From assembly GCA_002269645.1 (NCBI GenBank), contig NIVC01000340.1, forward strand, positions 124,001-188,000: a stretch of 64,000 nt of DNA. The letters run 5' to 3'. Below, piece after piece: positions 772-61,100 of this stretch. Position numbers and translations under genes: made by a program. The DNA is from Macrostomum lignano (taxonomy: Eukaryota). Each line of letters opens with the position of its first letter. Positions within the stretch are counted from its first letter, which is position 1. The notes under the pieces were generated by a model. The model did no database searches, was not told the origin of the DNA, and was given only the letters and a program-made list of their open reading frames with translations.

Positions 772-2093
772 ATGGCTAGAGCTGCTGCATTGCAGTCTGG
801 TGGCCTGATAGAGCCAATCTATGCTCACAATACATTTGCACTGAGCTTGCACTCTGCCTATGCTCAGGCTAATCCTGGTGAGTCAGTCTTTGTTGTAAAG
901 TAGTTGGTCATTATAATGTCATTTGAACCCCATCCCAATCACACAAATCCCCATCCCAATCATACAAATCCCTATCCTAATCTCACAAATCCCCATCCCA
1001 ATCACACAAATCCCCATCTCAATCACACAAATCCCCATCCCAATCACACAAATCCCCATACCAATCACACAAACCCCTAATCACACAAATCCCCATTCCA
1101 ATCACGCAAATCCCATTCCAATCACACAAATTCCCATACCAATCACACAAACCCCTAATCACACAAATCCCCATTCCAATCACGCAAATCCCATACCAAT
1201 CACACAAATCCCCATTCCAATCACACAAATCCCAATCCTAATCACACAAATCCCCATTCCAATCACGCAAACGCAAATCCCCATACCAATCACACAAATC
1301 CCCATTCTAATCACACAAATCCCCATTCTAATCAAACAAATCCCCATTCTAAATTACACAAATCCCAATCCAGGCCGGAACTTCCTGCTGTCGCCCATCT
1401 CGATATTCGCCACGCTCAGCATGATTCTGCCCGGCGCCCGGAAGCAGACGCTGGACCAGCTGGTGTCCGGGATGCGCCTGTCCGAGCCCGGACAGAAGCC
1501 GCTGAGTGCGGAGTCGCTGGCCCAGCTGGAATCGAGTCTGGGCCGGATGTTGCACTCTGTATCCAGCGACAGCCTTAAGTCAGTAAACAAGATTTTCATT
1601 GAAGCTGATATGAAGGTGAAATCGCATTACCTCTCCACCGTGTACTACAAATTCAATTCGTGGATTTACAAAGTGAGTTACTGTAAAATGGTTTTTAAAC
1701 ATTTGACTTCAAAAAATCCCAATGAGCACGTCACGCAATAAAATTATCTATAATCTCTAGAATCTCATCAGACAATCCAATGCTATTTTAGTATTTAGTT
1801 TAGTCAATACATTCATTTTATATTTACTTTCAATTTTGCACCAGGCTAACTTCAGTGGTGACCCAGAAACTGAGCGCGTTCGTATCAACAATAGGGTAGC
1901 AACCGCTACTAAAGACAAGATCACGGAACTCTTGAAGATGGGTTCAATTGGTACCTCGACTCGTTTTCTGCTGTGCAATGCACTGTACTTTAAAGGTAAA
2001 GGTTTTTGTAGGCTTATAGGCAGACAGACAGACAGGCAGGCAGACAGACAGACAGGCAGGCAGACAGACAGACAGGCAGACAGGCAGACACAC

Positions 2094-2153
<60 letters not shown>

Positions 2154-2191
2154 GGACACACAGGCAAACAGACAGACACACAGACAGACAC

Positions 2192-2222
<31 letters not shown>

Positions 2223-2279
2223 GGCAAACAGACAGACACACAGACAGACACACAGACAGACAGACAGACAGACAGACAC

Positions 2280-2316
<37 letters not shown>

Positions 2317-2343
2317 GACACAGACAGACAGACAGACACACAC

Positions 2344-2402
<59 letters not shown>

Positions 2403-2423
2403 CACACACAGACAGACACACAC

Positions 2424-2463
<40 letters not shown>

Positions 2464-2506
2464 CAGACGGACACACAGGCAAACAGACAGACACACAGAC
2501 AGACAC

Positions 2507-2537
<31 letters not shown>

Positions 2538-2590
2538 GGCAAACAGACAGACACACAGACAGACACACAGACAGACAGACAGACAGACAC

Positions 2591-2621
<31 letters not shown>

Positions 2622-2642
2622 CACACACAGACAGACACACAC

Positions 2643-2677
<35 letters not shown>

Positions 2678-4042
2678 AACACACACACAGACAGACAGAC
2701 AGACAGACAGACACACACTCAGACAGACACCTCCAACACCCGCAGCCAAGTGGACTCAGCCATTCGATCCCAAAGCCACAATTGACGCTCGATTCGAACT
2801 CAGCGCCTCAGCCGCCGTCTCCGCTCCGACGATGCGCAGAACTGGCCAGGTGCGACTTCTGTCCATCCCGGATGTGCTGACTGGCGTACGCCTCGGCTTC
2901 AACGACACCAAGGACCAGCGGCTGTCGCTGATTGCGCTGCTGCCAGCTCAGCGGCATCAACTGGACGAGATTCTGGCGAAGCTGACGGTGCAGGACTGGG
3001 CGCGGCTGGTCGGCGACCCCGGCGAGCTGGTGGAGGCCGAGCTGGAACTGCCGAAGGTGAGCAGCGCTGCACTTGCTTGATGTACATGCTTGATGTACAT
3101 GCTTGATGTACATGCTTGATGTACATGCTTGATGTACATGCTTGATGTACATGCTTACAGACTGGCATATTGGCGTCAGTACAGTCTGTAGGTTAGCTGG
3201 ACCTCCTGGATTTGAATTCTACCTCCCATCTGATGTACATGCTTGATGTACATGCTTGATGTACATGCTTGATGTACCTGCTTGATGTACATGCTTGATG
3301 AACATGCTTGATGCGCATGCTTGATGTACATGCTTGATGTACATGCGTGATGTACATGCTTGATGTACATGCTTGGTGTACATGCTTGATGTGCATGCTT
3401 GATGTACATGCTTGATGTACATGCGTGATGTACATGCTTGGTGTACATGCTTGATGTGCATGCTTGATGTACATGCTTGATGTACATGCGTGATGTACAT
3501 GCTTGATGTACATGCTTGATGTACATGCTTGATGTACATGCTTGATGTACATTCTTGATGTACATGCTTGATGTACATGCTTGATGTGCATGCTTGATGT
3601 GGCTGTGCTATGGCATGTGACATCAGCCTACTCACATAGTAGTCAGAGTCGCCCATAACCCGCCAATTGAACATCTCGCACCCAGGTGAAGCTGAGCAAC
3701 TTCGCTGAGCTCTCCAATGACGCCTACCTGCCCAAGCTGGGCATCGACCGCCTGTTCTCCAACCGCGCTGACCTCAGCGGCATCTCCTCCTCACCTGGTG
3801 ACCTGTTTGTCAGCAGCTTTGCTCACCAAGCCGCTATCGAGTGGGACGAGTTCGGAGCGGAAGGCGCCGCCGCATCCGCCGCCGTAGTGTCGGTGTTTGC
3901 CTCTGTGCGGACCGATCAGCCGATATCGATCAAGTTCGACCAGCCGTTCATTTTTGGAGTCGTTCGCGAAGTTGTCGACGAGAACGGCCAGTCGCGTCAT
4001 GTGCCGATTTTCCTTGGCCGGGTGACCGACCCCAGGGGTTAG
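772..4042 (+). CDS. Serpin (serine protease inhibitor family), 5 exons, about 407 aa, no signal peptide seen
   Basis: Exons 772-877, 1374-1672, 1845-1995, 2746-3056, 3686-4042; all GT-AG with matching phases (1,0,1,0); total 1224 nt. Serpin motifs: [55 protein letters not shown], hinge [26 protein letters not shown]. Confidence 0.93.
945..1373. repeat. About 21-bp minisatellite (CCCATCCCAATCACACAAATC) filling serpin intron 1
   Basis: The array runs up to the acceptor AATCCCAATCCAG at 1373. Confidence 0.95.
2020..2730. repeat. (GACA)n microsatellite in serpin intron 3
   Basis: Direct inspection; interspersed CACA variants. Confidence 0.97.
3074..3600. repeat. 13-bp minisatellite (CTTGATGTACATG)n in serpin intron 4, two blocks
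   Basis: Blocks at about 3074-3155 and 3231-3600 separated by about 75 bp of unique sequence; 13-aa period in the minus-strand ORFs. Confidence 0.95.
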
Positions 4043-7869: not shown

Positions 7870-9040
7870 GGCTGATGCTGGGGTTTTTAGTCTACACAGA
7901 GAGACACAGAGAGAGAGAGACAGATAGCAGCCGGAGAGTCTGTATGAGAGACTTGATGAAGAAGGGGGGACGGTGGCGCTCGGCGCGTCTGCTTTTATGC
8001 TCGTCAAGCTCGGGGTGGGGTGGGGGTGGCTAACTCTCTTGTTTACGAGCCCCTGCTGCATAGCATAGGAAAGTCGAGGGCCACGTGTCGGTGCAACCTC
8101 GTGAAGCCTCCTCCAGCAACCCCCCCCCCGCCAGCAATTGATAAGCCTCATCTTTTAGCTCTCTATTGTGCTCGGAGCAGCAGCCTCTCTCTATTCAAAT
8201 TCGGGGTTCTGTTTTTCTTCAACTGGCTGTCGAGCTATGCATATCTGTGGGTGTTTTTATTATTGCTATTCTAAGAATAGGTTGAGCCAAGCTATCGTGA
8301 AAGCATTGGGGCGCACAGTTTAGCACAGAGCCGCTGGTATTGTGCCTCTTAGCTGACGCACAATGGGCCCTGCAAGCGACTGTATGCTGACAACCATCGT
8401 TGCTTTGGCGACTGCATGCCCGCCTAAATTGCCGTGGGCACTGCTGCTGCATGCCCCGGGGCACGTGTTCTCAAGCATTGCTTTGCATTTTCCATTTTTC
8501 GTCTCCCTCCATCTCTTTCTTCTATCGATCCTATCTAGATATGAAGCTTGAACAATGAAATTAACCCCAGCCGCAGGGCCACGCAGAATAGCTATAGAAG
8601 AAGCTGAAAATTAATAAATTTCTTTTCTAAGTTTGAGCAGCAAGTTAAGATAGCTATAATAGAGCTGAAGATGGTCAGGTCAGGCCATTCAAGCGTGAAA
8701 GCAGCTTCTTGTGAAGCCAGCATCCCCCCTATCTCTCTTGTCTATTTGACAATTTTCCAAGCACGTGTCTTCGCAGAACACGTGCGTGTTAAGCCCACCT
8801 GCAGCTACTCAACACAGTTGTGTATCTAGCTAACCTTAGTACTCAAAACCAACCATCTAAAACTGATTCTGCACTGCATCGGCGCGTTTTGTTCCCAGTA
8901 ACCTCGTGTTGCGCGCAGAAATTTGAATACAGTTTTATTTTCTTGATGAACTCTGATTTAAAATAGCAAGTTTGAGTCTTTGATGATTCAGGTCTATACA
9001 GAATGGCAGATTTATAAAACTGGGAATCGATTGGATAATG

Positions 9041-12000
9041 GGAGCTACAGAGTTGAGCTACAGAGTTGAGCTACAGAGTTGAGCTACAGAGTTGAGCTAC
9101 AGAGTGAGCTGTAGAGTGAGCTATAGAGTGAGCTACAGAGTTGAGCTGCATAGTGAGCTGCAGAGTGAGCTGCAGAGCGAGCTGCAGAGCGAGCTACAGA
9201 GTGAGCTACAGAGTGAGCTGCAGAGTGAGCTGCAGAGTGAGCTGCAGAGTGAGCTGCAGAGTGAGCTACAGAGTGAGCTGTAGAGTGAGCTATAGAGTGA
9301 GCTACAGAGTTGAGCTGCATAGTGAGCTGCAGAGTGAGCTGCAGAGTGAGCTGCAGAGCGAGCTGCAGAGCGAGCTACAGAGTGAGCTACAGAGTGAGCT
9401 GCAGAGTCAGCTGCAGAGTGAGCTGCAGAGTGAGCTGCAGAGTGAGCTACAGAGTGAGCTACAGATTGAGCTTCAGAGTGAGCTGCAGACTGAGCTACAG
9501 AGTGAGCTGCAGAGTGAGCTGCAGAGTTGAGCTACAGAGTGAGCTGCAGAGTGAGCTGCAGAGTGAGCTACAGAGTGAGCTACAGAGTGAGCTACAGAGT
9601 GAGCTACAGAGTGAGCTATAGAGTGAGCTACAGAGTGAGCTATAGAGTGAGCTATAGAGTGAGCTACAGAGTGAGCTACAGAGTGAGCTACAGAGTGAGC
9701 TACAGAGTGAGCTACAGAGTGAGCTACAGAGTGAGCTACAGAGTGAGCTACAGAGTGAGCTACAGAGTGAGCTATAGAGTGAGCTGCATAGTGAGCTGCA
9801 GACTGAGCTACAGAGTGAGCTGCAGAGCGAGCTACAGATTGAGCTATAGAGGGAGCTATAGAGTGAGCTATAGAGTGAGCTGCATAGTGAGCTGCAGACT
9901 GAGCTACAGAGTGAGATGAACTCTGATTGAAAATAGAAAGTTTGAGTCTTGTAATGATTCAGGTCTATACAGAATGGCAGATTTATAAAACTGGGAATCG
10001 ATTGGGTAATAGGAGCTACAGAGTTGAGAGCGAGCGAGCTACAGAGTGAGCTGCAGAGTGAGCTGCAGAGTGAGCTGCAGAGTGAGCTGCAGAGTGAGCT
10101 ACAGAGTGAGCTACAGAGTGAGCTACAGAGTGAGCTACAGAGTGAGCTATAGAGTGAGCTACAGAGTGAGCTATAGAGTGAGCTATAGAGTGAGCTACAG
10201 AGTGAGCTACAGAGTGAGCTACAGAGTGAGCTACAGAGTGAGCTACAGAGTGAGCTACAGAGTGAGCTACAGAGTGAGCTACAGAGTGAGCTACAGAGTG
10301 AGCTATAGAGTGAGCTGCATAGTGAGCTGCAGACTGAGCTACAGAGTGAGCTGCAGAGCGAGCTACAGATTGAGCTATAGAGGGAGCTATAGAGTGAGCT
10401 ATAGAGTGAGCTGCATAGTGAGCTGCAGACTGAGCTACAGAGTGAGATGAACTCTGATTGAAAATAGAAAGTTTGAGTCTTGTAATGATTCAGGTCTATA
10501 CAGAATGGCAGATTTATAAAACTGGGAATCGATTGGGTAATAGGAGCTACAGAGTTGAGAGCGAGCGAGCTACAGAGTGAGCTGCAGAGTGAGCTGCAGA
10601 GTGAGCTGCAGAGTGAGCTGCAGAGCGAGCTACAGAGTGAGCTACAGAGCGAGCTACAGAGTGAGCTACAGAGTGAGCTACAGAGTTGAGCTACAGAGCG
10701 AGCTGCAGAGTGAGCTACAGAGTGAGCTACAGAGTTGAGCTACAGAGTGAGCTGCAGAGTGAGCTGCATAGTGAGCTGCAGAGTGAGCTGCAGAGTGAGC
10801 TACAGAGCGAGCTGCAGAGCGAGCTGCAGAGCGAGCTACAGAGTGAGCTACAGAGTGAGCTGCAGAGTGAGCTGCAGAGTGAGCTGCACAGTGAGCTGCA
10901 GAGTGAGCTGCACAGTGAGCTGCACAGTGAGCTGCAGAGTGAGCTATAGAGTGAGCTGCAGAGTGAGCTGCAGAGTGAGCTGCAGAGTGAGCTGCAGAGT
11001 GAGCTACAGAGTGAGCTACAGAGTGAGCTGCAGAGTGAGCTTCAGAGTGAGCTACAGAGTGAGCTACAGAGTGAGCTACAGAGTGAGCTATAGAGTGAGC
11101 TACAGAGTGAGCTACAGAGTGAGCTACAGAGTGAGCTACAGAGTTGAGCTACAGAGTGAGCTATAGAGTGAGCTATAGAGTGAGCTACAGAGTGAGCTAC
11201 AGAGTGAGCTGCAGAGCGAGCTACAGAGTGAGCTGCAGAGTGGGCTACAGAGTGAGCTACAGAGCGAGCTACAGATTGAGCTATAGAGGGAGCTATAGAG
11301 TGAGCTATAGAGTGAGCTGCATAGTGAGCTGCAGACTGAGCTACAGAGTGAGATGAACTCTGATTGAAAATAGAAAGTTTGAGTCTTGTAATGATTCAGG
11401 TCTATACAGAATGGCAGATATATAAAACTGGGAATCGATTGGGTAATAGGAGCTACAGAGTTGAGAGCGAGCGAGCTACAGAGTGAGCTGCAGAGTGAGC
11501 TGCAGAGTGAGCTGCAGAGCGAGCTACAGAGTAAGCTACAGAGCGAGCTACAGAGTGAGCTACAGAGTGAGCTACAGAGTTGAGCTACAGAGAGAGCTGC
11601 AGAGCGAGCTGCAGAGTGAGCTACAGAGTGAGCTGCAGAGTGAGCTGCAGAGTGAGCTACAGAGTGAGCTGCAGAGTGAGCTGCATAGTGAGCTGCAGAG
11701 TGAGCTGCAGAGTGAGCTGCAGAGCGAGCTGCAGAGCGAGCTACAGAGTGAGCTGCAGAGTGAGCTGCAGAGTGAGCTGCAGAGTGAGCTGCACAGTGAG
11801 CTGCAGAGTGAGCTGCACAGTGAGCTGCACAGTGAGCTGCAGAGTGAGCTGCAGAGTGAGCTGCAGAGTGAGCTGCAGAGTGAGCTACAGAGTGAGCTAC
11901 AGAGTGAGCTGCAGATTGAGCTTCAGAGTGAGCTATAGAGTGAGCTATAGAGTGAGCTATAGAGTGAGCTGCACAGTGAGCTTCAGAGTGAGCTGCACAG

Positions 12001-13470
12001 TGAGCTACAGAGTGAGCTACAGAGTGAGCTACAGAGTGAGCTACAGAGTGAGCTACAGAGTGAGCTACAGAGTGAGCTACAGAGTGAGCTACAGATTGAG
12101 CTTCAGAGTGAGCTGCAGACTGAGCTACAGAGTGAGCTGCAGAGTGAGCTGCAGAGTTGAGCTACAGAGTGAGCTGCAGAGTGAGCTGCAGAGTGAGCTA
12201 CAGAGTGAGCTACAGAGTGAGCTACAGAGTGAGCTGCAGAGTGAGCTGCACAGTGAGCTGCAGAGTGAGCTATAGAGTGAGCTACAGAGTGAGCTACAGA
12301 GTTGAGCTACAGAGTGAACTATAGAGTGAGCTATAGAGTGAGCTACAGAGTGAGCTACAGAGTGAGCTACAGAGTGAGCTACAGAGTGAGCTACAGAGTG
12401 AGCTACAGAGTGAGCTACAGAGTGAGCTACAGAGTGAGCTACAGAGTGAGCTACAGAGTGAGCTGCAGAGCGAGCTACAGAGTGAGCTGCAGAGTGGGCT
12501 ACAGAGTGAGCTACAGAGTGAGCTGCAGAGCGAGCTACAGAGTGAGCTGCAGAGTGAGCTGCAGAGTGAGCTGCAGAGCGAGCTACAGAGTGAGCTACAG
12601 AGCGAGCTACAGAGTGAGCTACAGAGTGAGCTACAGAGTTGAGCTACAGAGCGAGCTGCAGAGTGAGCTGCAGAGCGAGCTGCAGAGTGAGCTACAGAGT
12701 GCTACAGAGTTGAGCTCAGAGTGAGGTGCAGGCTGAGCCAAAGAGTGAGCTATAGAGTGAGCTACAGCGTGAGCTACAGAGTGAGGTGCAGGCTGAGCCA
12801 AAGAGTGAGCTATAGAGTGAGCTACAGCGTGAGCTACAGAGTGGGGGAGCAGGAGAAATGCCCGCAGACGAATTGCCCGCTGAGATTTGCCCGCAGTGCA
12901 ATTTTCCCGCGAGTGAATTGCCCGCGGAGTTTTTTCCTGCCGAGTTTTGCCCGCAATGCTTTTTTACTGCAGCGCATTTGGCAGATAGATCCTGTCTGTA
13001 TTGCCCCCCCCCCCAAAAAAAAATAAATATGCAGTTGATATGCAGTTACTATCAAAACGTTTTGATCGTGTAAATCTCTTTATTAAGATTTACATGTACT
13101 AAGCATTGGGAAGGCAATGCAGACAAAATCTGCCGCGTGGCCAAATGCGCTGCAGTAAGAAAGCATTGCAGGCAAACCTCGGCGGGAAAAAACTCCGCGG
13201 GCAATTCACTCGCGGGAAAATTGCACTGCGGGCAAATCTCGGCGGGAAAAGCTCGGCGGGCAAATCTCCCGGGCAAATCTCGGCCGGCAATTATTCTGCG
13301 GGAATTTCTCATGCCACAGATTGGGTTACATGTACAGAGTTGAGCTACAGAGTGAGCTGCAGAGCTAGAGTTGAGCTACAGAGTGAGTCACAGAGTGAGC
13401 TGCAGAGTTGAGCTACAGAGTGAGTCACAGAGTTGAGCTACAGAGTGAGTCACAGAGTGAGCTACAGAGA
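9041..13470. repeat. 12-bp satellite (GAGCTACAGAGT / GAGCTGCAGAGT)n with higher-order structure
   Basis: Array interrupted by a recurring approximately 100-bp non-repetitive block (8945, 9915, 10446, 11352) and by a foldback element at 12853-13310; it resumes at 13338-13470. Confidence 0.97.
12853..13310. mobile_element. Foldback / MITE-like element with long imperfect inverted arms
   Basis: Left arm GAGAAATGCCCGCAG...GAGATTTGCCCGCAGTGCAATTTTCCCGCGAGTGAATTGCCCGCGGAGTTTTTTCC...ACTGCAGCGCATTTGGC is the reverse complement of 13139-13310; AT-rich spacer; no TSD identified. Confidence 0.85.
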
Positions 13471-13519
13471 GACTGACCAACAGTTGTCCCGTTTTGTCTC
13501 TTCTCAACTCTCTCCTAGC

Positions 13520-16830: not shown

Positions 16831-17150
16831 CAAGACTGAAGTGCCCCTAGCAAACAAATCAAGACCATGGACCAGCAGACACAGCAGGATGCACACTGGG
16901 CAGATGAATGAGCAGAAGACAATCCAATGAGCGAGACTGAAGTGCCCCCGGCTAATAAATTGAGACTAGGGACCAGCAGACACAATAGGACATGCACTGG
17001 TCAGACAAATGAGCAGATTTTCCCAAGGAGCAAGACTGAAGTGCCCCTGGCTAATGAATCGAGACCAGGGACTAAGGGACTGGCAGACACAACAGGACAC
17101 ACACTGGGCAGACAAATGAGCAGCAAGGGCCAAACAAGAAGACAGTGAGG
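16831..17150. repeat. Diverged approximately 100-bp tandem repeat, 3 copies (CAAGACTGAAGTGCCCC...GCAGACAC...ACTGG...AATGAGCAG)
   Basis: Copies begin near 16831, 16933 and 17032. Confidence 0.8.
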
Positions 17151-17502
17151 GCTAGATTAGAAGACAGGTGCAGGGTTACAACAATGGCATAGCATGGCCT
17201 TTTCCAGCCTTACTGAATTGATTTATATTGACTGAATTATTTTACATTGGGTGCCATGTCGAGAAAATAAGACTAAAAACTAGACTAACAACATTTAAAT
17301 TTGAGTTAAATTGATACTGAGAGCGAAGGTGCAGTAAGTGGGTGCAAGGCCCAAACTAGTATATTTATAGGACATTAAATTGCAGGGGGTTTGAATTGAA
17401 GATAATAAAGAGAGGGGTGGAATGCACGACTAAAGAGAGGTGAAAATGGAGAGCCAATCAGAAGGCAGCTAGGGAGAGAGATAAGAATAACAAGATTGAG
17501 CT

Positions 17503-17615
<113 letters not shown>

Positions 17616-19059
17616 AAACATGAAAGAGTAAGTACAGTAAGAGTAAAGGTGAACTAAAGAAATGACTAGGAAAGTCGCAACAATAACAACAAAACTTCTA
17701 AAAATACAAAAATATATAGGCCTATTATGAAGACTACTTGATTTTATTATTATTTACTGATCAAAGGAATCTATCCCATGTGCCAACTGCGCCAAGTTGC
17801 AGGCTGTCATTTTTCCTTTTATGTCAAATGCACTGAGTATGCTGGAAAAATCGCCAATTTGTGCCAGAAGATTTTGACTATGGTATCCAACCCTTGGGCT
17901 TGGCCTTAGCTTAGGCATTTTGAAACTTCACAATAGCAATCTGGCTTGCACAATAATTATGCTTATTCTCAGCCTTTTTTATCTCTCTTCTCATCTCTCA
18001 TTTCTTTTCTTCTTTTTTCTCCTCTCCTTTCTCTTTTCTTCTTATTGTTGTCTATCAAGCTTTGCAGATAACAGTTGTATTTTAACTTAGGAAATAAGAT
18101 GTAAGCATAGCAGGTCTTAAAGAAAGAATAGGAAAGCTGGGGCCTTTAGCTGCTTTGGTGGGAAATTGAGGTTAGGAAAGATGACTATAAAGAATTGAGG
18201 CTAACATTAAAGGAATAAGTATTAGTGAAGGCGATTCTTCAGGGCACAACGCTTATCTTCCTTTTCCTCTCCATTCTCTTCTCCTCTCTCTCCTTTCTTT
18301 TCTTGTTCTCTTCTCTTCTATTTAATCCCTTTTATCTATCTTTTATCTTATCTTCTTTTATCTCCTTTATTCTTTTGCATCTCTTTTTTATTTCTCTTCT
18401 TTATTCTCTCTCCTCTTTCCCTTCCTTTGGCCTGCAGTCATGCCTGGTTCTCTATCTAGTCTGAGGTAAAATGTCTGCCAATCTCTGGTCTAGGTTGTGT
18501 AGACCCTAAGTGTTATACACTAAAACAAAAATCCTTTCTTAACTAAATAAATGTCAGTATATTCCAAAATAGAAAATTTCTATAAAATATATCAATTTCT
18601 CCTATACAAGGTCATTCAACTTCACAAATGAGTTTTATTTCTTGTCTTATAAGATAGTTGTATTTTAATTATAATAAGTTATTATTTAGTCTCATTGAAA
18701 AAAGTATCTACCAAAACAATGATATATCTATTAGAGTTTTTGCAATAATTTTCAATAATTTTTAATGGAAATTTTGATTAAAAAATGTTATTAATATATG
18801 TTTAGTTTATTATAAACTTTTTTAATTACCCGCTGGGCTGAATTTAGCTGTCTTTTATCTGATGTGTTGTCCAGAGTTTAATCCGGCAGGAATAGCAAAT
18901 TTACATGCAAAAAAATGGACGAAAACCGGACGAAAAGTTTACAAAACAGATGAAAGTGTTGAAAATATGACGTTTATCCGGTTTGGTATCCAGCTGTGTG
19001 TCCGGTTATTGCCCGATAAGTAATCCAGAGGAAGCCAGATAGGGCAGCGGAGCCAACTC

Positions 19060-19310
19060 CGGATGAAAACCGGATGAAATGTATGGATGTTGCAGCCAGA
19101 TGAGAAACCGGAGCCATTTCCGGATAAAATGTATGGATGTTACAGCCGGATGAGAAACCAGAGTCATTTCCGGATCAAAACCGGATGAAATGTATGGATG
19201 TTACAGCCAGATGAGAAACCGGAGCCATTTCCAGATGAAATGTATTGATGTTACAGCCGGATGAGAAACCGGAGCCATTTCCGGATCAAAACCGGATGAA
19301 ATGCATGGAT
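19060..19310. repeat. Subterminal 50-60-bp repeats (CCGGATGAAATGTATGGATGTTACAGCCGGATGAGAAACCGGAGCCATTT)
   Basis: About 4 copies inside the left end of the 18829-23860 element. Confidence 0.85.
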
Positions 19311-19873
19311 ACCTGTATACTGTCGTCGGATAATAATGTACATTCTAGATGCTTATTACTCAGCCTTAATTTGAGCTCCTTTACAGCGGCTTCCAAAGGT
19401 TTGGCACAAAAATTGCACTGTGTGGCGGCTATTATAGCTACGGCTCCTGCTCCTTATCTATAGCTGCTGCTCCTGCTTTGATTCTGCTCGTATCTGTATG
19501 AACAAGATAAGGCCAGATAGCAGAGTATTATAAAGGCTTTAATCGAAACAGTAAGGCGATCTATATAACTTTTATCCAGACACATACATGGGCGAATGCC
19601 GCAAAAATATTTGTAGGCCCAGTGCCAGTTTAATTATTACGACAATGAAAAGTAGCTAAAGTTCAACATTATAACGTATATGTCACTCACTTCTCCGCCT
19701 CAATGGAGTCAACGTCCCACGATTCGCTATCCAAAACTCCAACATACCAGTCCGCCTACTTTCTACTCTTCTGCGGCTTTCCCGGCCCGCCTGAAACCCG
19801 ACATTGTCAAGTTCATTATCAAGCATTAATGCAGCTGGACTGGTCCCATAGTGCCACACTGCGAAGTCATTAA

Positions 19874-21706
19874 TCAATTGTCACCAACTTTGGAGACCAG
19901 ATTCAGTAGGTCTTCCTGGTCTCCCTCGAGGTCGGTGATGTCCCTAATTGGCGGCTGGCCGAAAAGTTCTCTCGCCGCACCGAAAATCTTGCTGGCAGGG
20001 GCTTCGTCGGCCGAATCGTCACCAATGACACGCACAACCGTGTCAACGGCATCTTTGGCGACTGCCTTACCCGTACGTTTGGCAATGCGGCGGGCTCTAG
20101 GGGCCGTCGCGGAGGTCGCCTGCAGCTGTCGCACACGTTTAGGCAGCCCCAACTTCTGCCTGGCGGTTTCGCCGCAGCGGGTAAATGCTCTGTGCAGATC
20201 TCCACTATCATACTTGACACCGGCGTGCTGCAGCCAGAGCCTGGCGGCACCCAATTTGCCGGGATTGGCCTTCGTGGATACATAACCGGACGAGCTGCGG
20301 CCCGATAGGCTGCTGTGTGCGAGTTCGTTGTTCGTAAACAACGCTCTAAACAACGCCCTCATGACGGATAAACGGGCCGATCGCTGGGCCAAAAGGCGTG
20401 CCTGTTCGTCGACTGGTTCGTCAATGTCGACAGGCATCTGCAGTGACTGCTGTAAGTCGCGCAAGCGATTGTCAAGTGACGCACGAAGCTCTGTGCTCAC
20501 CTTTACCGACGGCATGCTGTCAGATACTGTGTGACTGTGTGCGAACGATGGTCCCGCCTCGGAGGCTGTTTTGCACACATTCAAGAGGCTTCGAGTCTGC
20601 GACGCCGACAGCTCGCAATGGACGGGAAAAATGATGGACTCTTCATCGTCCATCTGCACGTCGTCGTCGGGGCTGTTGACTCCGAAATTTTCGACGTCTT
20701 CAGGAGAAGTCGCGACAGCCCGATGAGCAGCTGCGAAGTTGGGCGTCAGGCAATCAGAGGCATGGATGATGTGCGCGTTAGTGGCCTTCACATTACGCTC
20801 CAGATTTAGAAACTTATTAGAACGCTCCAGTTCTAGATCGTGAACCAGCCTCTTCTCAATTTTCCCCGCGATGGCAAGGTTTTGTTGCAGGGCGCTCAAC
20901 TCCTGTCGCAGGCGGGCTTCGACTGCACGAGCCGCACTAATCTCAGCGGCTGAAATTGCAAGTCAACAGTTCAAATTTCATCAAATGTCATTAAAGAGGG
21001 GAGCAAAATTTATGAATTCTGAGTACTCACTCTGCGCGTCAGCCAGGAGCTTGGCTCTTCGCAGCTCAAGCGCAAACCCCTTACAGGAAGGGCACCCTCG
21101 GGGCAGCTCTGTCGGCTGTGCGTGGACGTTGGTCAAATTTGCGTCATCTGACGCAGCTGCTTTTGTAGCGAACGGACCGCGAATCAGTCTGCCGGCGTAC
21201 TTCCTGGCAGTCTTTCGGTTTGTTTTCGCGGTGACAACTTGTACAACGCAGCCAACAGTCACAGGACGTGCGGAGTCCCGAGCCACGGCGACTATTGCTG
21301 GTGTCGGAGCAGAGCTGTTTGTACCGACAACCTGAGTTTTTTCGTTATACTCGTCGTACTGAAAGACGAAGAACCTCTGTGTATTCTCACACTTGTATGG
21401 AACCATGTCGGTAGTACCTCGATTGGTTGCGGCGGCAGCAGTCTGTGACGACGAGTTCGCAGCGGAGTCGGCACCTCGATCGGCTGCGGCGGCAGCAGTC
21501 TGTGACGACGAGTTCGCAGCGGAGTCGGCACCTCGATCGGCTGCGGCGGCAGCAGTCTGTGACGACGAGTTCGCAGCGGAGTCGGCACCTCGATCGGCTG
21601 CGGCGGCAGCAGTCCGTGACGACGAGTTCGCAGAGACTGTCTTCGGCGGGCGACTAGTAGGCTTTTTGTCTTTTTGTCCTTTGTCACGTGCTGCTTTGTG
21701 CTTCAT
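19874..21706 (-). CDS. Coiled-coil plus BEN-domain-like protein (transposon cargo), at least 2 exons, about 583 aa from the ATG at 21706
   Basis: Exons 21706-21031 and 20949-19874, 81-nt GTGAGT...TTTCAG intron, phase 1 matches. Segment at about 20380-20150 (VMRALFRALFTNNELAHSSLSGR...KANPGKLGAARLWL...LHRAFTRCGETARQK) fits the BEN pattern L..LF...EL...S..G...L.P.K...I. Heptad segment RLRQELSALQQNLAIAGKIEKRL; in-frame 57-bp repeats. The true 5' start is uncertain. Confidence 0.7.
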
Positions 21707-21911
21707 CTTGTTGCTGAAGTTGTTCATGTAATTAAAGATTAAAATTGTATTCAATGAAACGAAATTATCTATATACTTTCATACGTGGAAATATTTGTGT
21801 GTAGTAAATTCAGTGGCAGAATCCATATTGGATGATTAACGGCGCAATGCAGATGCATGTTTAATAGTCCACCGATTGACCGATTAGTTTGTGCACTGAA
21901 TTCTGAATCTG

Positions 21912-22586
21912 CTAAACAGTCCAAAAATACGTCTTACCACTGCCATCGTCGGCTAGATGACCTTGGCGATCGTCATCAGACTCGTCCCGCTGCGATGCAG
22001 CAGATTCGTCATCAGACTCGGCCCGCTGCGATGCAGTAGATTCGTCATCAGACTCGGCCCTCTGCGATGCTGCAGATTCGTCATCAGATTCGGCCCGCTG
22101 CGATGCAGCAGATTCGTCATCAGACTCGGCCCGCTGCGATGCAGCAGATTCGTCATCAGACTCGACCCGCTGCGATGCAGCAGATTCGTCATCAGACTCG
22201 GCCCGCTGCGATGCAGCAGATTCGTCATCAGACTCGGCCCGCTGCGATGCAGCAGATTCGTCACCAGACTCGACCCGCTGCGATGCAGCAGATTCGTCAC
22301 CAGACTCGGCCCGCTGCGATGCAGCTGATTCGTCACCAGACTCGGCCCGCTGCGATGCAGCTGATTCGTCACCAGACTCGGCCCGCTGCGATGCAGCAGA
22401 TTCGTCATCAACTGACGTAGCGCCCTCGGCAGGGTTGGCCGACCGGGATCCAACACTGCTGGGACGCACCGGAGATCGTGAACAATCTGTTCTCGAGCCA
22501 CGTCCTCCTCGGGCAGCTGCTCTGCGTTTGCGCATGTACTGTCGCATGTACTCGCGACGCCCGCGGTTGATTTCATCGCCATCCAT
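21912..22586 (-). CDS. ORF with a basic N-terminal helix (RREYMRQYMRKRRAA) and 12 in-frame acidic 12-aa repeats (DDESAASQRAES); probably the first exon of the cargo transcript
   Basis: ATG at 22586; GC-rich; the 36-bp repeat keeps the frame; strong donor G|GTAAGA at 21938/21937. Confidence 0.6.
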   Translation of the reverse strand: MDGDEINRGRREYMRQYMRKRRAAARGGRGSRTDCSRSPVRPSSVGSRSANPAEGATSVDDESAASQRAESGDESAASQRAESGDESAASQRAESGDESAASQRVESGDESAASQRAESDDESAASQRAESDDESAASQRVESDDESAASQRAESDDESAASQRAESDDESAASQRAESDDESTASQRAESDDESAASQRDESDDDRQGHLADDGSGKTYFWTV

Positions 22587-24303
22587 TGGAATGCGCTGGA
22601 AATGTTTTACCGCAGTAACTTAGTGTGCCAAGAAAATATGATAAGGAATAGTTTAGCCATATACGGCCTAACTATCCTTACGTAAAGCTAACAACGTAGA
22701 TGTGTACTCTACAATTCCTATCCGAATTTCCATTTCTATACGAAAGGACGTGCGGTAACACATCAAGTACTATACGCATCAGCTGTCAAGTCAAAGTCAA
22801 AATCTGAGTCAGCGATCAAAGTCAACCTGAACGAAATGTCGTAGCAAACATAGATCTAAGGCAGCCCTCATATGTATACACTGGCACAAAAATTTTGAAA
22901 GAAACGTAGTAGGGTAAGAAGCTAACATCACCTCCTGGATCAAAAAAAGCACTTAGGGTAGTCAAAAGGAAACTAGGGAATTATAGTGACCTTCACGGGA
23001 TCAATCAAGTAGGTCTTCATTTGATGAGACAGATAGATAGATAGCCCCTGTCGACTGCTTCAATTGTATGATGTAATCTAAAGTTGTCCTATTTATGAAA
23101 GAAAAGAACACTTTTTAGTAATAATCCGTGCACAGTTTACGCAAATACACATGTATAAATAAATAAATATATATATTTCCAATGGGTATTGTAAACAGTA
23201 CAATAAATAGAAATGGCATAATCAACAAAACTTTCTGCCAACATTGATGCCCAGTGGCATCTGGTTCATAGATTCGGGTACAGAAGTAAACAACAGGCAC
23301 ATGTCCACTCGGCAGTCTTTTCCGAGGTATTTGAGCCGCAGTCCGCGTTTTGCTTCTCCCGGTCCGTATTTGAGCCTTGTGCGCTGAAAACTGACATGAA
23401 AGGGGACGGAAATGGCATAAAAATGGATCTTTTTCCCCGGGTATATTATATTTTAAAACACGTGAACTTCACTTCAAGTGAACTCCCTCATCCGGATTTT
23501 GTCCGGTTCACTATCCGGGATTTTATCACTGTAAGACGGATTCACAGCCGGATAAAAAACCGGATCAACTCCGGGTAGAAAGCTATGATTTATCCGACTT
23601 TCATCTGCTTCTTATTCTGGTTGGCAGTCCGGTTTTCATCCGCTGATCGACCGGAGCAGGAATCGGACACAATCCGGATAAAATGTAACCAATAAAAACA
23701 CTTTAATCCGGTTTTGCTCTGGAGTTTCCTCCGTTTGTTAGTCCGGTAAGAACTGCCAATCAAAACCGGATAAAAATTCATTTTCGTCCAGAAAAGTCTA
23801 AAATTACGGATTAAACCGGATGAAGGCCGGGTAAATACCGGGTACCGACAGCCAGGCGGGTATAACAAAATGGAGTGGCCATGGGACCATTTCCCCTGGT
23901 TTGTAATTAAGGAAGGAGGATTATTAAGGTTAACTGTTTTTTTCAACTTTGAATATAGTAATTAATTATATAGTAGTAGTAGGTTTTATAATTTTTGATA
24001 TATATCAATTAAGATAAACAATGTTAGTAGAATAAGATCTTAAAATTCAATGTTGCTGGCTATAGAAAAAATACTTTTCAAAATGCAAATTACTAAGCTA
24101 CTAGTTTTAGTATTTATATTAAAGTTCTCTTTAGTAAAAAAGCAAGATGCCCTAAATGTTGTTCTTTTTCCAATTTTTTACTTTATAAGGCCATATATGA
24201 GTACTAGTCCTGAATTTTTTCTACATTAAATAAATAAATATGTAAACTCTGAATTAACAATGAATAATTTTGTATTTCAGAATTTTGGAAAAATAGTAAT
24301 TCA

Positions 24304-36502
<12,199 letters not shown>

Positions 36503-58100: not shown

Positions 58101-61100
58101 TTGATCCCATACTCTAAGTATCCCAGATTCCTTGATCCCATACTCTAAGTATCCCAGATTCCTTGATCCCATACTCTAAGTATCCCAGATTCCTTGATCC
58201 CATACTCTAAGTATCCCAGATTCCTTGATCCCATACTCTAAGTATCCCAGATTCCTTGATCCCATACTCTAAGTATCCCAGATTCCTTGATCCCATACTC
58301 TAAGTATCCCAGATTTCTTGATCCCATACTCTAAGCATCCCAAATTCCTTGATCCCATGCTCTTAGTATCCCAGATTCATTGATCCCATACTCTAAAGTA
58401 TCCCAGATTCCTTGATCCCATACTCTAAGTATCCCAGATTCCTTGATCCCATACTCTAAGTATCCCTGATTCCTTGATCCAATGCTCTTAGTATCCCAGA
58501 TTCATTGATCCCACACCCTAAGCATCCCAGATTCCTTCATCCCATACCCAAACTATCCCAGATTCCTTGATCCCACACCCTAAGTATCCCAGATTCCTTG
58601 ATCTCGCCGCACCCTAACATCCCATATTCATTGATCCCACACCCTAATATCTCATATTGATTGATCCCACACCTAAATATCCCATACACCTAAGAAATAT
58701 CCCATATCCTGATCCCATTCTTGATTGACAACAATCTGATGGATTGCATTACCTACATGATCTAGTTGCCACACCCCGCAGATACTATCAGGCCTGGTTC
58801 GAGTGCCCGCCAAGCGGCTGGCAGGAGCGCATGGACGCCAGCTTGATCAACGCCAACCGACAGGCAGCTGAAACCGCCGCTATCACAGAGGCAGACGACG
58901 GCCTGTCCTCCGGCGCCCCGGACACCGTGGCCAGCTTTGGCCTGTCCACAGGCGGCGCAGTGGCGACAGATTTCACCAGCTCGAAGGCGACGCCTCCCGT
59001 TGGTCGATTTAGTAGGCGAAAGCGCCTGTTCTCGGATTCGTTTGCCGCATCTGTCCGCGGCGCTGGAGGCCTCCGACGGCGTCACGGCACCGGAAGCGGC
59101 GGAGGCAGCATCAGCTCATGCTGCGGTCGCCGACCATCGCCGTTGAATCCCTACGATGGCGATGTCGATCTATCGGCTACAGATGACGATATCATCGATA
59201 AAGAGCGGTCCGATTTTAACAAAGACTTCTCAATGGAACAAAGACTTGACTGCGATGATAACTTTGAGGACGACGATTTTGATAGCGGGGAATTTTCCAA
59301 TGCCACTGGGTTTGGCACCAGCGGCGGCGGCTATGACAGTGTCGAACTGGCGGCGCTGGGCAGCCGTTGGACAATGCCCGAGAGTGACACCACCACTGAG
59401 GAGCCGTCAACTGCTGGCCGCCTGTCCGTACCGATTCAGCAAAGACGGTGCGATACTTATAGTTTTCTGCTCTACTCGTCAGTGACTACTCAAGTAGACG
59501 GACGGGAAACTACATTTCCTGTAGTCCTTGCTCGTTGTCTGTACATCCTCTGTAGGGCAGAAACACTTATGAAAGCCGATTCCCTGACGGCGAAGAGAGT
59601 GCACATGCCTGACCAATTAGAAAGTCAAAGGACCGCAGTACACCCTGTGTGAGCATGTGTATGAGTGGCTGAGTGCCCGCTTGTACGTGTGCTCAGGAAT
59701 CTGTGGAATGGGTAGAATCGCCTATAAGTAAAATTATTGAAAACTTTTATTGCCCCCCCTTTGCAGCTCAGCCTCTAAGAAGCGGCTTCATCACAAGCAG
59801 AAGCAGAAGAAAACGTCAAACAACAATCGATCAATAAAGCACGTTGATGACGATTCGGTAGAAATCGTATTTGAACATTCCAACCCGGGTGCCGCTTATA
59901 ATCGTTTGTCGAGCTCGTCTGATGAGGATGATGATGATGCAGCGTTTTCTAAGAAAGATGTCGCCAAAGCGACGGCGTCGCTGGTTCATAGCGACGACAA
60001 CAATGACGATAAAGTCGGTCAAGCCGGTGCAGGTCGAAGTCGGCGGCGTCGAAAAACGGCGTCGAACGCCGCCTCATCAGCGGCGCTGGCCTCGGAGCAG
60101 TCGAATCCGACAACTCACGAATCCAAGCTCTATCTGTACATACAGATGCAGCTGTGCCAGAAGGAGAGCCTTCGCGACTGGCTGCGAGTAAATACGGGCG
60201 ACAGGGACCGGGTTCGAGTTCGGGACGTCTTTGGTCAAATCTGTCAGGCCGTGTCGTTTGTGCATCAGTGCAATTTGATTCACCGGGACTTGAAGAGTTC
60301 CAATATTTTCTTTGCGTTGGATGGCTCCGTTAAGATTGGTAGGTTTTCAATGAGATTAGAGAGGGTCAGATTAGAGCTAGGATTAGATGAAGGAGATTAG
60401 ATGCATACAGGATGAAATTTAGATAGGAAGAAGATTCCAATAAGAGAGTAAGCTAGGGTGAGAATGAGCTTGGAAAGGCTGAGATGGAATGAGACTAGGG
60501 GGGTGAGATAAATTGAGATTACATTAGAGGGTGAGATGAATTGAGATTAGCGGATGAGATAAATTGAGATTAGGGAGGATGAGCTGAATTGAGATTAGAA
60601 GGTGCGATGGAGTGGGATTAGAGACGGTGAGATGAAATGAGATTAGAGAGGGTGAGATAGAATGGGATTAGAGAGGGTGAGATGGCATGAGATTAGAGAG
60701 GGTGGGATAGAATGGGATTAGAGACTGAGATAAAATGATATTAGAAGGGGTGAGATAGAATGAGATTCGAGAGGGTGAGATGGCATGAGATTAGAGAGAG
60801 TGAGATGGCATGAGATTAGAGAAGGTAAGATTAGAGCTAGGGTTAGATGAAGGAGATAAGAGAGGGTGAGATGGAATGAGATAAGAGAAGGCGAGATGGC
60901 ATGAGATTAGAGAGGGTGAGATGGAATGAGATTAGAGTGGGTGAGATGGCATGAGATTAGAGAGAGTGAGATAGCATGAGATTAGAGCGGGTGAAATTAG
61001 AGCTAGGGTTAGATAAAGGAGATAAGAGAGGGTGAGATGGAATGAAATTAGAGAGTGAGATAGCATGAGATTAGAGAGGGTGAAAATAGATAGTCAAGTT

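Follow-up and report, generated by a model that had tools for sequence, protein, structure and literature searches.

We analyzed a 64-kb window of the Macrostomum lignano genome (assembly GCA_002269645.1, NIVC01000340.1:124001-188000, numbered here 1-64,000) that contains one copy of a DNA transposon carrying a spliced gene. The element spans positions 18829-23860, a discrete unit of 5,032 bp with a GC content above that of its AT-rich surroundings, and the exons of its minus-strand gene join into a 584-amino-acid (aa) product. An earlier note, made from the sequence alone, had described it as a CMC/CACTA-like transposon with a gene for a coiled-coil plus BEN-domain protein and no recognizable transposase, and had suggested that the protein may bind repeat arrays at the element's own ends, as an analogue of the plant protein TnpA. 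Because both ends and the gene recur at a second locus with a clean 2-bp target-site duplication (TSD), the element is a member of a real and mobile family of DNA transposons.

Termini, subterminal arrays and a second element

The element opens with CCCGCTGGGCTG and closes with CAGCCAGGCGGG, each directly flanked by TA. Taken with their flanks, the two ends, TACCCGCTGGGCTG at 18827-18840 on the plus strand and TACCCGCCTGGCTG at 23849-23862 on the minus strand, form a terminal inverted repeat (TIR) that agrees at 10 of 12 positions, and no further TIR-like site of this kind occurs elsewhere in the 64-kb window. Reading the flanks as a 3-bp TSD sets TTA against TAT, a mismatch.

Inward of the termini lie dense arrays of short motifs with a CCGG core, of the forms (A)AACCGGAYGAAA and TTTATCCGGTTT. 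The terminal 923 bp contain 31 such motifs, 16 in the first ~500 bp on the left and 15 in the last ~420 bp on the right, which amounts to 33.6 per kb, a 17-fold enrichment over the element's interior (1.95 per kb) and over the remainder of the window (1.97 per kb). The longer form CCGGATRAAA occurs eight times in the window, always within the element (five times at 19059-19301 and three times at 23548-23775), with 0.16 occurrences expected and none of 100 shuffles reaching eight. Part of the left array (19050-19310) consists of a 111-bp tandem unit in 2.4 copies, and the TCCGGA core of the arrays is a palindrome.

An exhaustive HMMER search of the last exon against 1.84 billion representative proteins returned only three relatives, P0001 and P0002 from M. 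lignano and P0003 from a Tara marine metagenome scaffold; a word-indexed search with the whole 584-aa protein returned no homologue, low-complexity words possibly saturating it. P0001 (PAA73791.1) is encoded in a second element, on contig NIVC01000992.1 (L001), which is 2.1 kb long and bounded by a perfect 22-bp TIR, CCCGCCTGGCTTTTTCATCCGG...CCGGATGAAAAAGCCAGGCGGG, whose first 11 bases are identical to the right terminus of the window element. The ends are asymmetric, and the left and right subterminal regions at L001 align with the left and right ends in the window, respectively; the left regions have an exact 22-mer in common, and the right regions are 66% identical over 235 bp. Relative to the ends, the homologous genes of both elements are oriented alike, and the k-mers AAACCGGA and CCGGATGA are the most frequent ones in all four ends. 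The L001 element lies in a (GACA)n microsatellite, and the repeat closes up exactly when the element and one AG are taken out, which it does not if a duplication of 0 or 3 bp is assumed. This demonstrates that the family is mobile and generates a 2-bp TSD, which is not TA-specific, since it is TA in the window and AG at L001; the shared ends also validate the short TIR of the window element. The TA-flanked CCC...GGG ends with a 12-bp imperfect TIR and the CCGGAT(G/A)AAA arrays at both ends, which the earlier note had read from this DNA, are therefore real features, and its concern that the two termini might not co-occur at other loci is answered by L001, with the amendment that a TA target is not obligatory.

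The 22-mer CCGGACGAAAAGTTTACAAAAC is exact in both left regions (at ~11270-11291 of L001) though the elements are otherwise ~66-85% identical, and it may mark a specific functional site. A metagenome scan gave no match to this 22-mer, and the TIR pattern gave only chance matches in GC-rich contigs, none of which encodes the BEN protein. As for the other relatives, P0002 is a third paralogue in M. lignano, known from a chimeric gene model that also includes retrotransposon domains. P0003, of 245 aa, is a distant relative with a coiled coil and a BEN-like region, encoded in eukaryotic DNA (L002:1-1812) by an exon that begins directly after a ...ctttttag acceptor, with ~60-bp direct repeats ahead of it at about 100-230; no CCGG arrays were seen in these 1,812 bp.

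The gene, its predicted domains and its history

Exons 21713-21031 and 20952-19874 join across a GTGAGT...TTTCAG intron into an uninterrupted 584-aa open reading frame (ORF) on the minus strand, in agreement with the intact frames and canonical splice sites of the earlier note. The upstream one of these exons contains a 57-bp coding tandem repeat (3.8 copies, 21416-21633) and, in exon 2 of the gene, a ~90-aa region (MVPYKCENTQRFFVFQYDEY..., aa ~98-190) that is not assigned to any domain and has no Pfam or PDB sequence match. Further upstream, a second ORF with a 36-bp repeat (12 copies at 21970-22410, encoding DESAASQRAES) could serve as a first exon. The best-looking donor, GTAAGA at 21937, shifts this ORF by one base relative to the frame of the exon that follows; GTATTT at 21930, 7 nt downstream, joined to the strong acceptor at 21714/21713, is in frame and yields an uninterrupted ORF of 805 aa, and donors of this quality are used in another modeled M. 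lignano gene. The upstream ORF has no homologue in L001. Exact protein look-ups of the ORFs at 19874-20899 and 21912-22586, within the element, and at 35126-36502, outside it, found no record.

Profile comparison and structural modeling support an all-alpha BEN fold for the C-terminal domain (~20407-20150), with a long predicted coiled-coil helix before it. With a cut-off of E<=10, a profile built from four family members matched exactly three chains in the whole PDB sequence set, all of them BEN: two chains of NACC1 (E 0.047 and 0.049) and Bsg25A/Elba1 (E 0.27), with the LL..lF..e.La.ssLsG signature of BEN aligned in register in the NACC1 and Bsg25A matches. For calibration, when Bsg25A is used as a phmmer query against the PDB, Insv is the sole BEN chain that it recovers. 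Comparison of the family profile with a small BEN alignment by hhalign gave a probability of 67.6% (E 4.9e-5). Similarly, an AlphaFold2 (AF2) model of aa 373-505 built on a three-sequence alignment, with a predicted local distance difference test (pLDDT) score of 78.5 and a predicted template-modeling score (pTM) of 0.67, has as its top 11 Foldseek matches in the PDB exclusively BEN domains or BEN-DNA complexes (Bsg25A, Insv, NACC1, BEND6, and BANP), with probabilities of 0.97-1.0, template-modeling (TM) scores of 0.46-0.63 and, at best, root-mean-square deviations of 2.3-3.0 Å over 77-84 columns. The top match among the viral models of BFVD is a bracovirus BEN protein. N-terminal to this domain, the AF2 single-sequence model of the last exon predicts one helix of ~77 residues (residues 2-78) with pLDDT 76-92 over the first ~50; the model of the whole exon (pLDDT 46.7) is poor except for the coiled coil. 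Both the BEN domain that had been placed at 20380-20150 and the coiled coil before it are thus supported.

No ORF of at least 120 aa exists in the element outside the gene, six-frame translations of its non-gene parts contain stops throughout, and a Pfam scan of the gene products (the 584-aa product and the upstream ORF) matched no family, transposase or nuclease included, so that the earlier observation that a recognizable transposase is lacking holds. Pfam scans of P0001, P0003 and segments of P0002 likewise matched no family.

The history of the gene can be read from the comparison of the two elements. The last exon in the window and L001 9692-10330 encode proteins with 42% aa identity over 228 aa, rising to 58% in the BEN core and falling to 37% elsewhere. 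The proportion of nonsynonymous differences (pN) is 0.32 in the BEN core and 0.46 elsewhere, while that of synonymous differences (pS) is ~0.83; because synonymous sites are saturated, we give pN and pS instead of dN/dS. The ends of the two elements have diverged to a degree comparable with the gene. The L001 element is a derivative without the whole N-terminal half of the protein, and the BEN-encoding part is kept as an open frame. The exhaustive HMMER search identified no host parent gene among the 1.84 billion representatives. Because gene and ends have diverged together and pN is well below pS, the gene is better explained as a native accessory gene than as a recent capture, and the substitution pattern shows a gene that has apparently long traveled with the element under coding constraint. 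Table 1 lists the features of the window element.

Table 1. Features of the BEN-carrying element in the window (UTR, untranslated region).
Feature	Position	Strand	Remarks
Left TSD (TA)	18827..18828		Equals TA at 23861-23862
Left TIR, CCCGCTGGGCTG	18829..18840	+	Two mismatches to family consensus CCCGCCTGGCT
Left subterminal region	18829..19330		16 CCGG-core motifs, 111-bp repeat, 22-mer
22-mer CCGGACGAAAAGTTTACAAAAC	18926-18947		Exact match in L001 element
Presumed 3' UTR	19331..19873	-	ATTAAA at 19634 and 19543, minus strand
Last coding exon	19874..20952	-	Stop at 19874-19876; coiled coil, linker, BEN domain, C-terminal tail
BEN domain (predicted), aa ~408-493 of 584-aa product	20150..20407	-	Profile, hhalign, AF2 and Foldseek
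Long continuous helix, predicted coiled coil, aa ~228-304	20717..20947	-	AF2 single-sequence model
Intron, 78 nt	20953..21030	-	GTGAGT...TTTCAG
Exon with ATG at 21706-21704	21031..21713	-	Holds 57-bp coding tandem repeat and ~90-aa region
Putative first intron	21714..21930	-	217 nt, 33% GC; donor ambiguous
Upstream ORF / putative first exon	21931..22586	-	Basic N-terminus, then 36-bp repeats
Presumed promoter / 5' UTR	22587..23439	-	No long ORF
Right subterminal region	23440..23860		15 CCGG-core motifs; 23625-23859 has 66% identity to L001 9506-9273
Right TIR, reverse complement CCCGCCTGGCTG	23849..23860	-	First 11 bases equal family TIR
Right TSD (TA)	23861..23862		

Superfamily placement and genomic surroundings

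Membership of the element in the CMC superfamily, as the earlier note had it, is unproven. The TSDs (TA/TA in the window, AG/AG at L001) fall within the short range known for CMC elements (2-5 bp; 2 bp in Mirage and animal CACTA), and the subterminal repeats are of the CACTA type, a feature typical of CACTA and not exclusive to it; the combination of a 2-bp TSD and subterminal arrays fits CMC, particularly Mirage and animal CACTA (PMC6004678; PMC12730594). The termini, however, are CCC...GGG, whereas CMC(T) elements have CA..TG termini in most cases (PMC12730594) and Chapaev and animal CACTA have invariable CAC..GTG termini (PMC4079192; PMC6004678). The CMC/CACTA label is thus consistent with the TSD and the arrays, at variance with the termini, and not established. 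Among other superfamilies, piggyBac would fit the CCC...GGG termini and is excluded by the absence of a TTAA TSD, the flanks being ..ATTA and TATA.. in the window and ..ACAG and AGAC.. at L001, and Tc1/mariner as well as the TA-specific ESTA/PHISTA are ruled out by the AG/AG TSD at L001.

A Mirage-type transposase is present in M. lignano, as L001 18943-20496 is an open frame of 518 codons that matches PF06869/DUF1258 with 55.8 bits (cut-off 33.1). Together with a second gene on the same strand, it forms a possible autonomous CMC/Mirage unit (L001:16943-20496); this second gene (16943-18893) has seven exons, all GT-AG, encodes 400 aa of unassigned function, and ends 50 bp before the Mirage ATG. 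This Mirage-type element may have its subterminal region at L001:15800-15930, where short CCATGG/ATCCATGA-type motifs form an array that precedes the 400-aa gene by ~1 kb. CMC/Mirage elements belong to the same 2-bp TSD class as the BEN-carrying element and occur in the same genome, and the L001 unit has a two-gene layout with a separate multi-exon gene directly upstream of the transposase ORF, but it lacks the CCCGCCTGGCT TIR and CCGG arrays in the 20 kb seen, and no similarity between its upstream gene and the BEN family is detectable. By eye, the C-terminus of the 400-aa product looks BEN-like, an impression that is not supported: in hhalign, neither the family profile nor the BEN reference reaches a probability of 1%, and searches with hmmsearch, with blastp, and with phmmer in the PDB were all negative. 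The segment of P0002 upstream of its BEN region was considered as the N-terminus of a CMC transposase, and it has no homologues and no Pfam match; its alignment with the L001 Mirage ORF scored below the shuffle mean, leaving the CMC lead unsupported.

The element adjoins a Frizzled gene model (24283-36502, plus strand, 1228 aa, with Fz and Frizzled Pfam domains), and because ~420 bp separate its right end from the model start, it may sit in the Frizzled promoter region. A 218-aa ORF annotated in its own right (34052-34708, minus strand) lies within this model and does not differ between the two homeologous contigs. Of these contigs, NIVC01000340.1 is 100% identical to window 24052-44708, and the homeologous NIVC01000517.1 shows 94-96% identity to it, with large differences in tandem-repeat copy number, for example at window 25836-26860, 28725-29352, 30025-30423, and 30960-31675; the sequence compared ends ~2.6 kb short of the element insertion site. 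Elsewhere in the window, ~4.5 kb of satellite-like tandem repeats (9000-13500) give rise to spurious long ORFs (SYRVSYRV..., ELQSELQS...), and long (CAGA)n/(GTCT)n microsatellites at 1757-3080 and 32477-33750 produce artificial ORFs on both strands; these microsatellites are of the repeat type that hosts the L001 element. By eye, the translated ORFs at 923-3080 are serpin-like, broken by the microsatellite, and those at 58744-60400 resemble an eIF2-alpha-kinase-like protein kinase.

Possible roles of the BEN protein

We lean, by a little, toward a non-autonomous cut-and-paste family that carries its own BEN gene as an accessory end-binding factor. The family has the TIR consensus CCCGCCTGGCT, a 2-bp TSD without sequence specificity, and ~400-500 bp of CCGG-core motifs per end, with the coiled-coil/BEN protein as its long-standing cargo. 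The protein would dimerize through its coiled coil, and the dimer would bind the (A)AACCGGAYGAAA arrays of its own ends, that is, AAACCGGATGAAA-type repeats; once bound, it could pair the ends, attract a trans-supplied transposase, or do both. Because the gene lies downstream of the arrays adjoining 23860, the protein would probably control its own promoter as well. The catalytic transposase must then come from another element, and our best guess is an enzyme of the CMC/Mirage type, since this type produces 2-bp TSDs and is present in the M. lignano genome. Element-encoded proteins that bind the ends and help a transposase are known, namely TnpA of En/Spm and the Myb-like protein of Harbinger. 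We put the odds of the mechanism proposed here for the BEN protein at roughly even. The idea of a TnpA analogue has become more plausible because gene and ends have co-diverged, the motif is conserved in both elements, and BEN is the best-conserved part of the protein; the BEN structures matched by Foldseek are, moreover, all DNA complexes, which provides a precedent for DNA binding.

Known systems share some of these properties and differ in others. Like the element described here, En/Spm (CACTA) combines short TIRs and a short TSD of 2-3 bp with motifs that are reiterated in either orientation over hundreds of bp at each end, and it encodes a non-catalytic DNA-binding protein, with 5' arrays that overlap the promoter region of the gene. 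Unlike the BEN protein, TnpA is not a BEN protein, belongs to the same transcription unit as the transposase TnpD and has arrays of a 12-bp motif, whereas the element here has no transposase, has CCC...GGG in place of CACTA termini, and has arrays that its protein may bind. PIF/Harbinger follows the two-component logic proposed here, in which a DNA-binding protein at subterminal sites recruits a separate DDE transposase, but with a 3-bp TWA TSD, a Myb/SANT fold and both genes in one element, as against the 2-bp TSD and BEN fold of the window element. The BEN-solo factors Insensitive, Elba1/Bsg25A, and Elba2, as well as BANP, BEND6, and NACC1, have the same C-terminal fold with the signature in register, and their architecture, in which a helical region is followed by one BEN domain at the C-terminus, matches as well; these are host genes, however, with 18-21% identity to the element protein, and the Pfam BEN model misses the element family. 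Pack-MULE and Pack-CACTA elements and the TET/JBP-carrying transposons also have a non-transposase gene in a DNA transposon, but Pack elements carry recent, variable host fragments, whereas the cargo here is conserved across diverged members. In bacteria, a BEN-like fold recognizes transposon ends in the DBD1 domain of Tn3-family TnpA, where it reads the terminal repeats (PMC9579193); there it is part of the transposase polypeptide, with no sign of common descent with the element protein.

Several observations count against the role that we favor. Binding of the BEN protein to the CCGG arrays and its part in transposition are something we infer, and the bounded elements examined number only two. 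The left TIR of the window copy is degenerate, matching at 10 of 12 positions and without the TTTTCATCCGG extension, for which reason this copy may be immobile, and the TIR taken alone is within chance, as at least two matches with at most two mismatches arise in 19% of shuffles. The 5' exon structure is ambiguous between the 584-aa and 805-aa models. When the window protein, P0001, the P0002 segment and P0003 were scanned with the Pfam BEN model (PF10523), none matched at thresholds of E<=1 to 10, so that BEN is invisible to Pfam in this family, and the sequence E-values (0.047-0.27) and Foldseek E-values (0.04-0.5) of the BEN matches are individually weak; of the domain checks suggested in the earlier note, AlphaFold with Foldseek returned the BEN fold and Pfam did not. 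All four ends start with CCCGC and depart from the CA(C)...(G)TG termini usual for CMC elements. The Mirage gene at L001 lies 7.5 kb from the BEN element, is not within CCCGCCTGGCT TIRs in the ~20 kb of L001, and has different upstream repeats. No transposase with CCCGCCTGGCT TIRs was found in the window or in ~20 kb of L001, no genome-wide DNA search having been made.

A regulator with no part in transposition, which would bind the CpG-containing CCGG arrays or host sites and act as an autorepressor, an anti-silencing factor or a host-chromatin factor, is an alternative that we consider improbable though deserving of some weight. The characterized proteins among the matches (Insv, Elba/Bsg25A, BANP, BEND6, and NACC1) regulate transcription in a sequence-specific manner or act as insulator proteins, the gene has the right-end arrays upstream of it, and other DNA transposons carry epigenetic accessory genes such as TET/JBP (PMC12730594). 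The two ends nevertheless both have arrays, so that the gene is flanked by them on its 3' side too, as would be expected of cis-sites for transposition. Regulation and transposition are also not exclusive roles, and TnpA of En/Spm has both. A Pack-type element, in which a captured host coiled-coil/BEN gene is carried passively without a role in the life cycle of the element, was the other option raised in the earlier note. Non-autonomous DNA transposons are well known to capture genes, Pack-MULEs and Pack-CACTA being examples, and the missing transposase, the introns and the low-complexity coding repeats would all suit such an origin. Pack-type cargo is, however, recent and differs between members, while here the same gene occurs in the same orientation between homologous ends at L001, at 42% aa identity and with saturated pS; given this divergence, any capture must be ancient, with the gene kept under constraint since. 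Moreover, the 2.1-kb L001 derivative retains the BEN part as an open frame, no host parent has come to light, and both M. lignano relatives are embedded in transposon sequence. With pN below pS in a gene conserved between diverged elements, we now regard passive carriage as distinctly unlikely.

Two further explanations concern the nature of the element itself. It could be autonomous if the 584/805-aa protein, or an undetected domain in it, were a recombinase, and the ~90 aa of exon 2 and the N-terminal ORF do lack a domain assignment; these parts are short or consist of low-complexity repeats, no transposase or nuclease family in Pfam matches, and the L001 derivative has perfect TIRs despite having lost the N-terminal half, which makes autonomy very improbable. 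That there is no transposon, and a host gene is flanked by CCGG-rich repeats by chance, might be suggested by the single copy in the window and by the 12-bp TIR considered in isolation, but is effectively refuted by the perfect 22-bp TIR, homologous ends and precise 2-bp TSD at L001.

A bolder formulation, which we put forward tentatively and hold to be somewhat doubtful, is that a lineage of eukaryotic DNA transposons recognizes its ends by means of BEN domains; in the flatworm family, a dimeric coiled-coil/BEN protein would be the TnpA-like factor that reads CCGG arrays and hands the ends to a separate, possibly Mirage-type, transposase. To our knowledge, two-component DNA transposons are few, with En/Spm TnpA and the Harbinger Myb-like protein as the known examples, and such systems are instructive on end recognition and on the origin of host transcription factors, which can be recruited from transposon-borne DNA-binding domains such as THAP, BED, Myb/SANT, and CENP-B. 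A full-text literature search for BEN domains and transposons turned up no account of a BEN accessory gene in any eukaryotic DNA transposon. If the protein does not bind the arrays, the M. lignano repeat library would still gain a non-autonomous transposon family with well-defined limits. If it does, the element would offer a natural BEN-DNA recognition pair to study and a candidate cis/trans toolkit in M. lignano, a species in which stable transgenesis has been reported, and it would suggest that BEN-domain regulators may have arisen or spread by way of transposons. If the bolder formulation is true, BEN would join THAP, BED, Myb/SANT, and CENP-B among the transposon-borne DNA-binding domains, as a source of host transcription factors, and would be linked to the BEN-like domain with which bacterial Tn3 transposases bind transposon ends.

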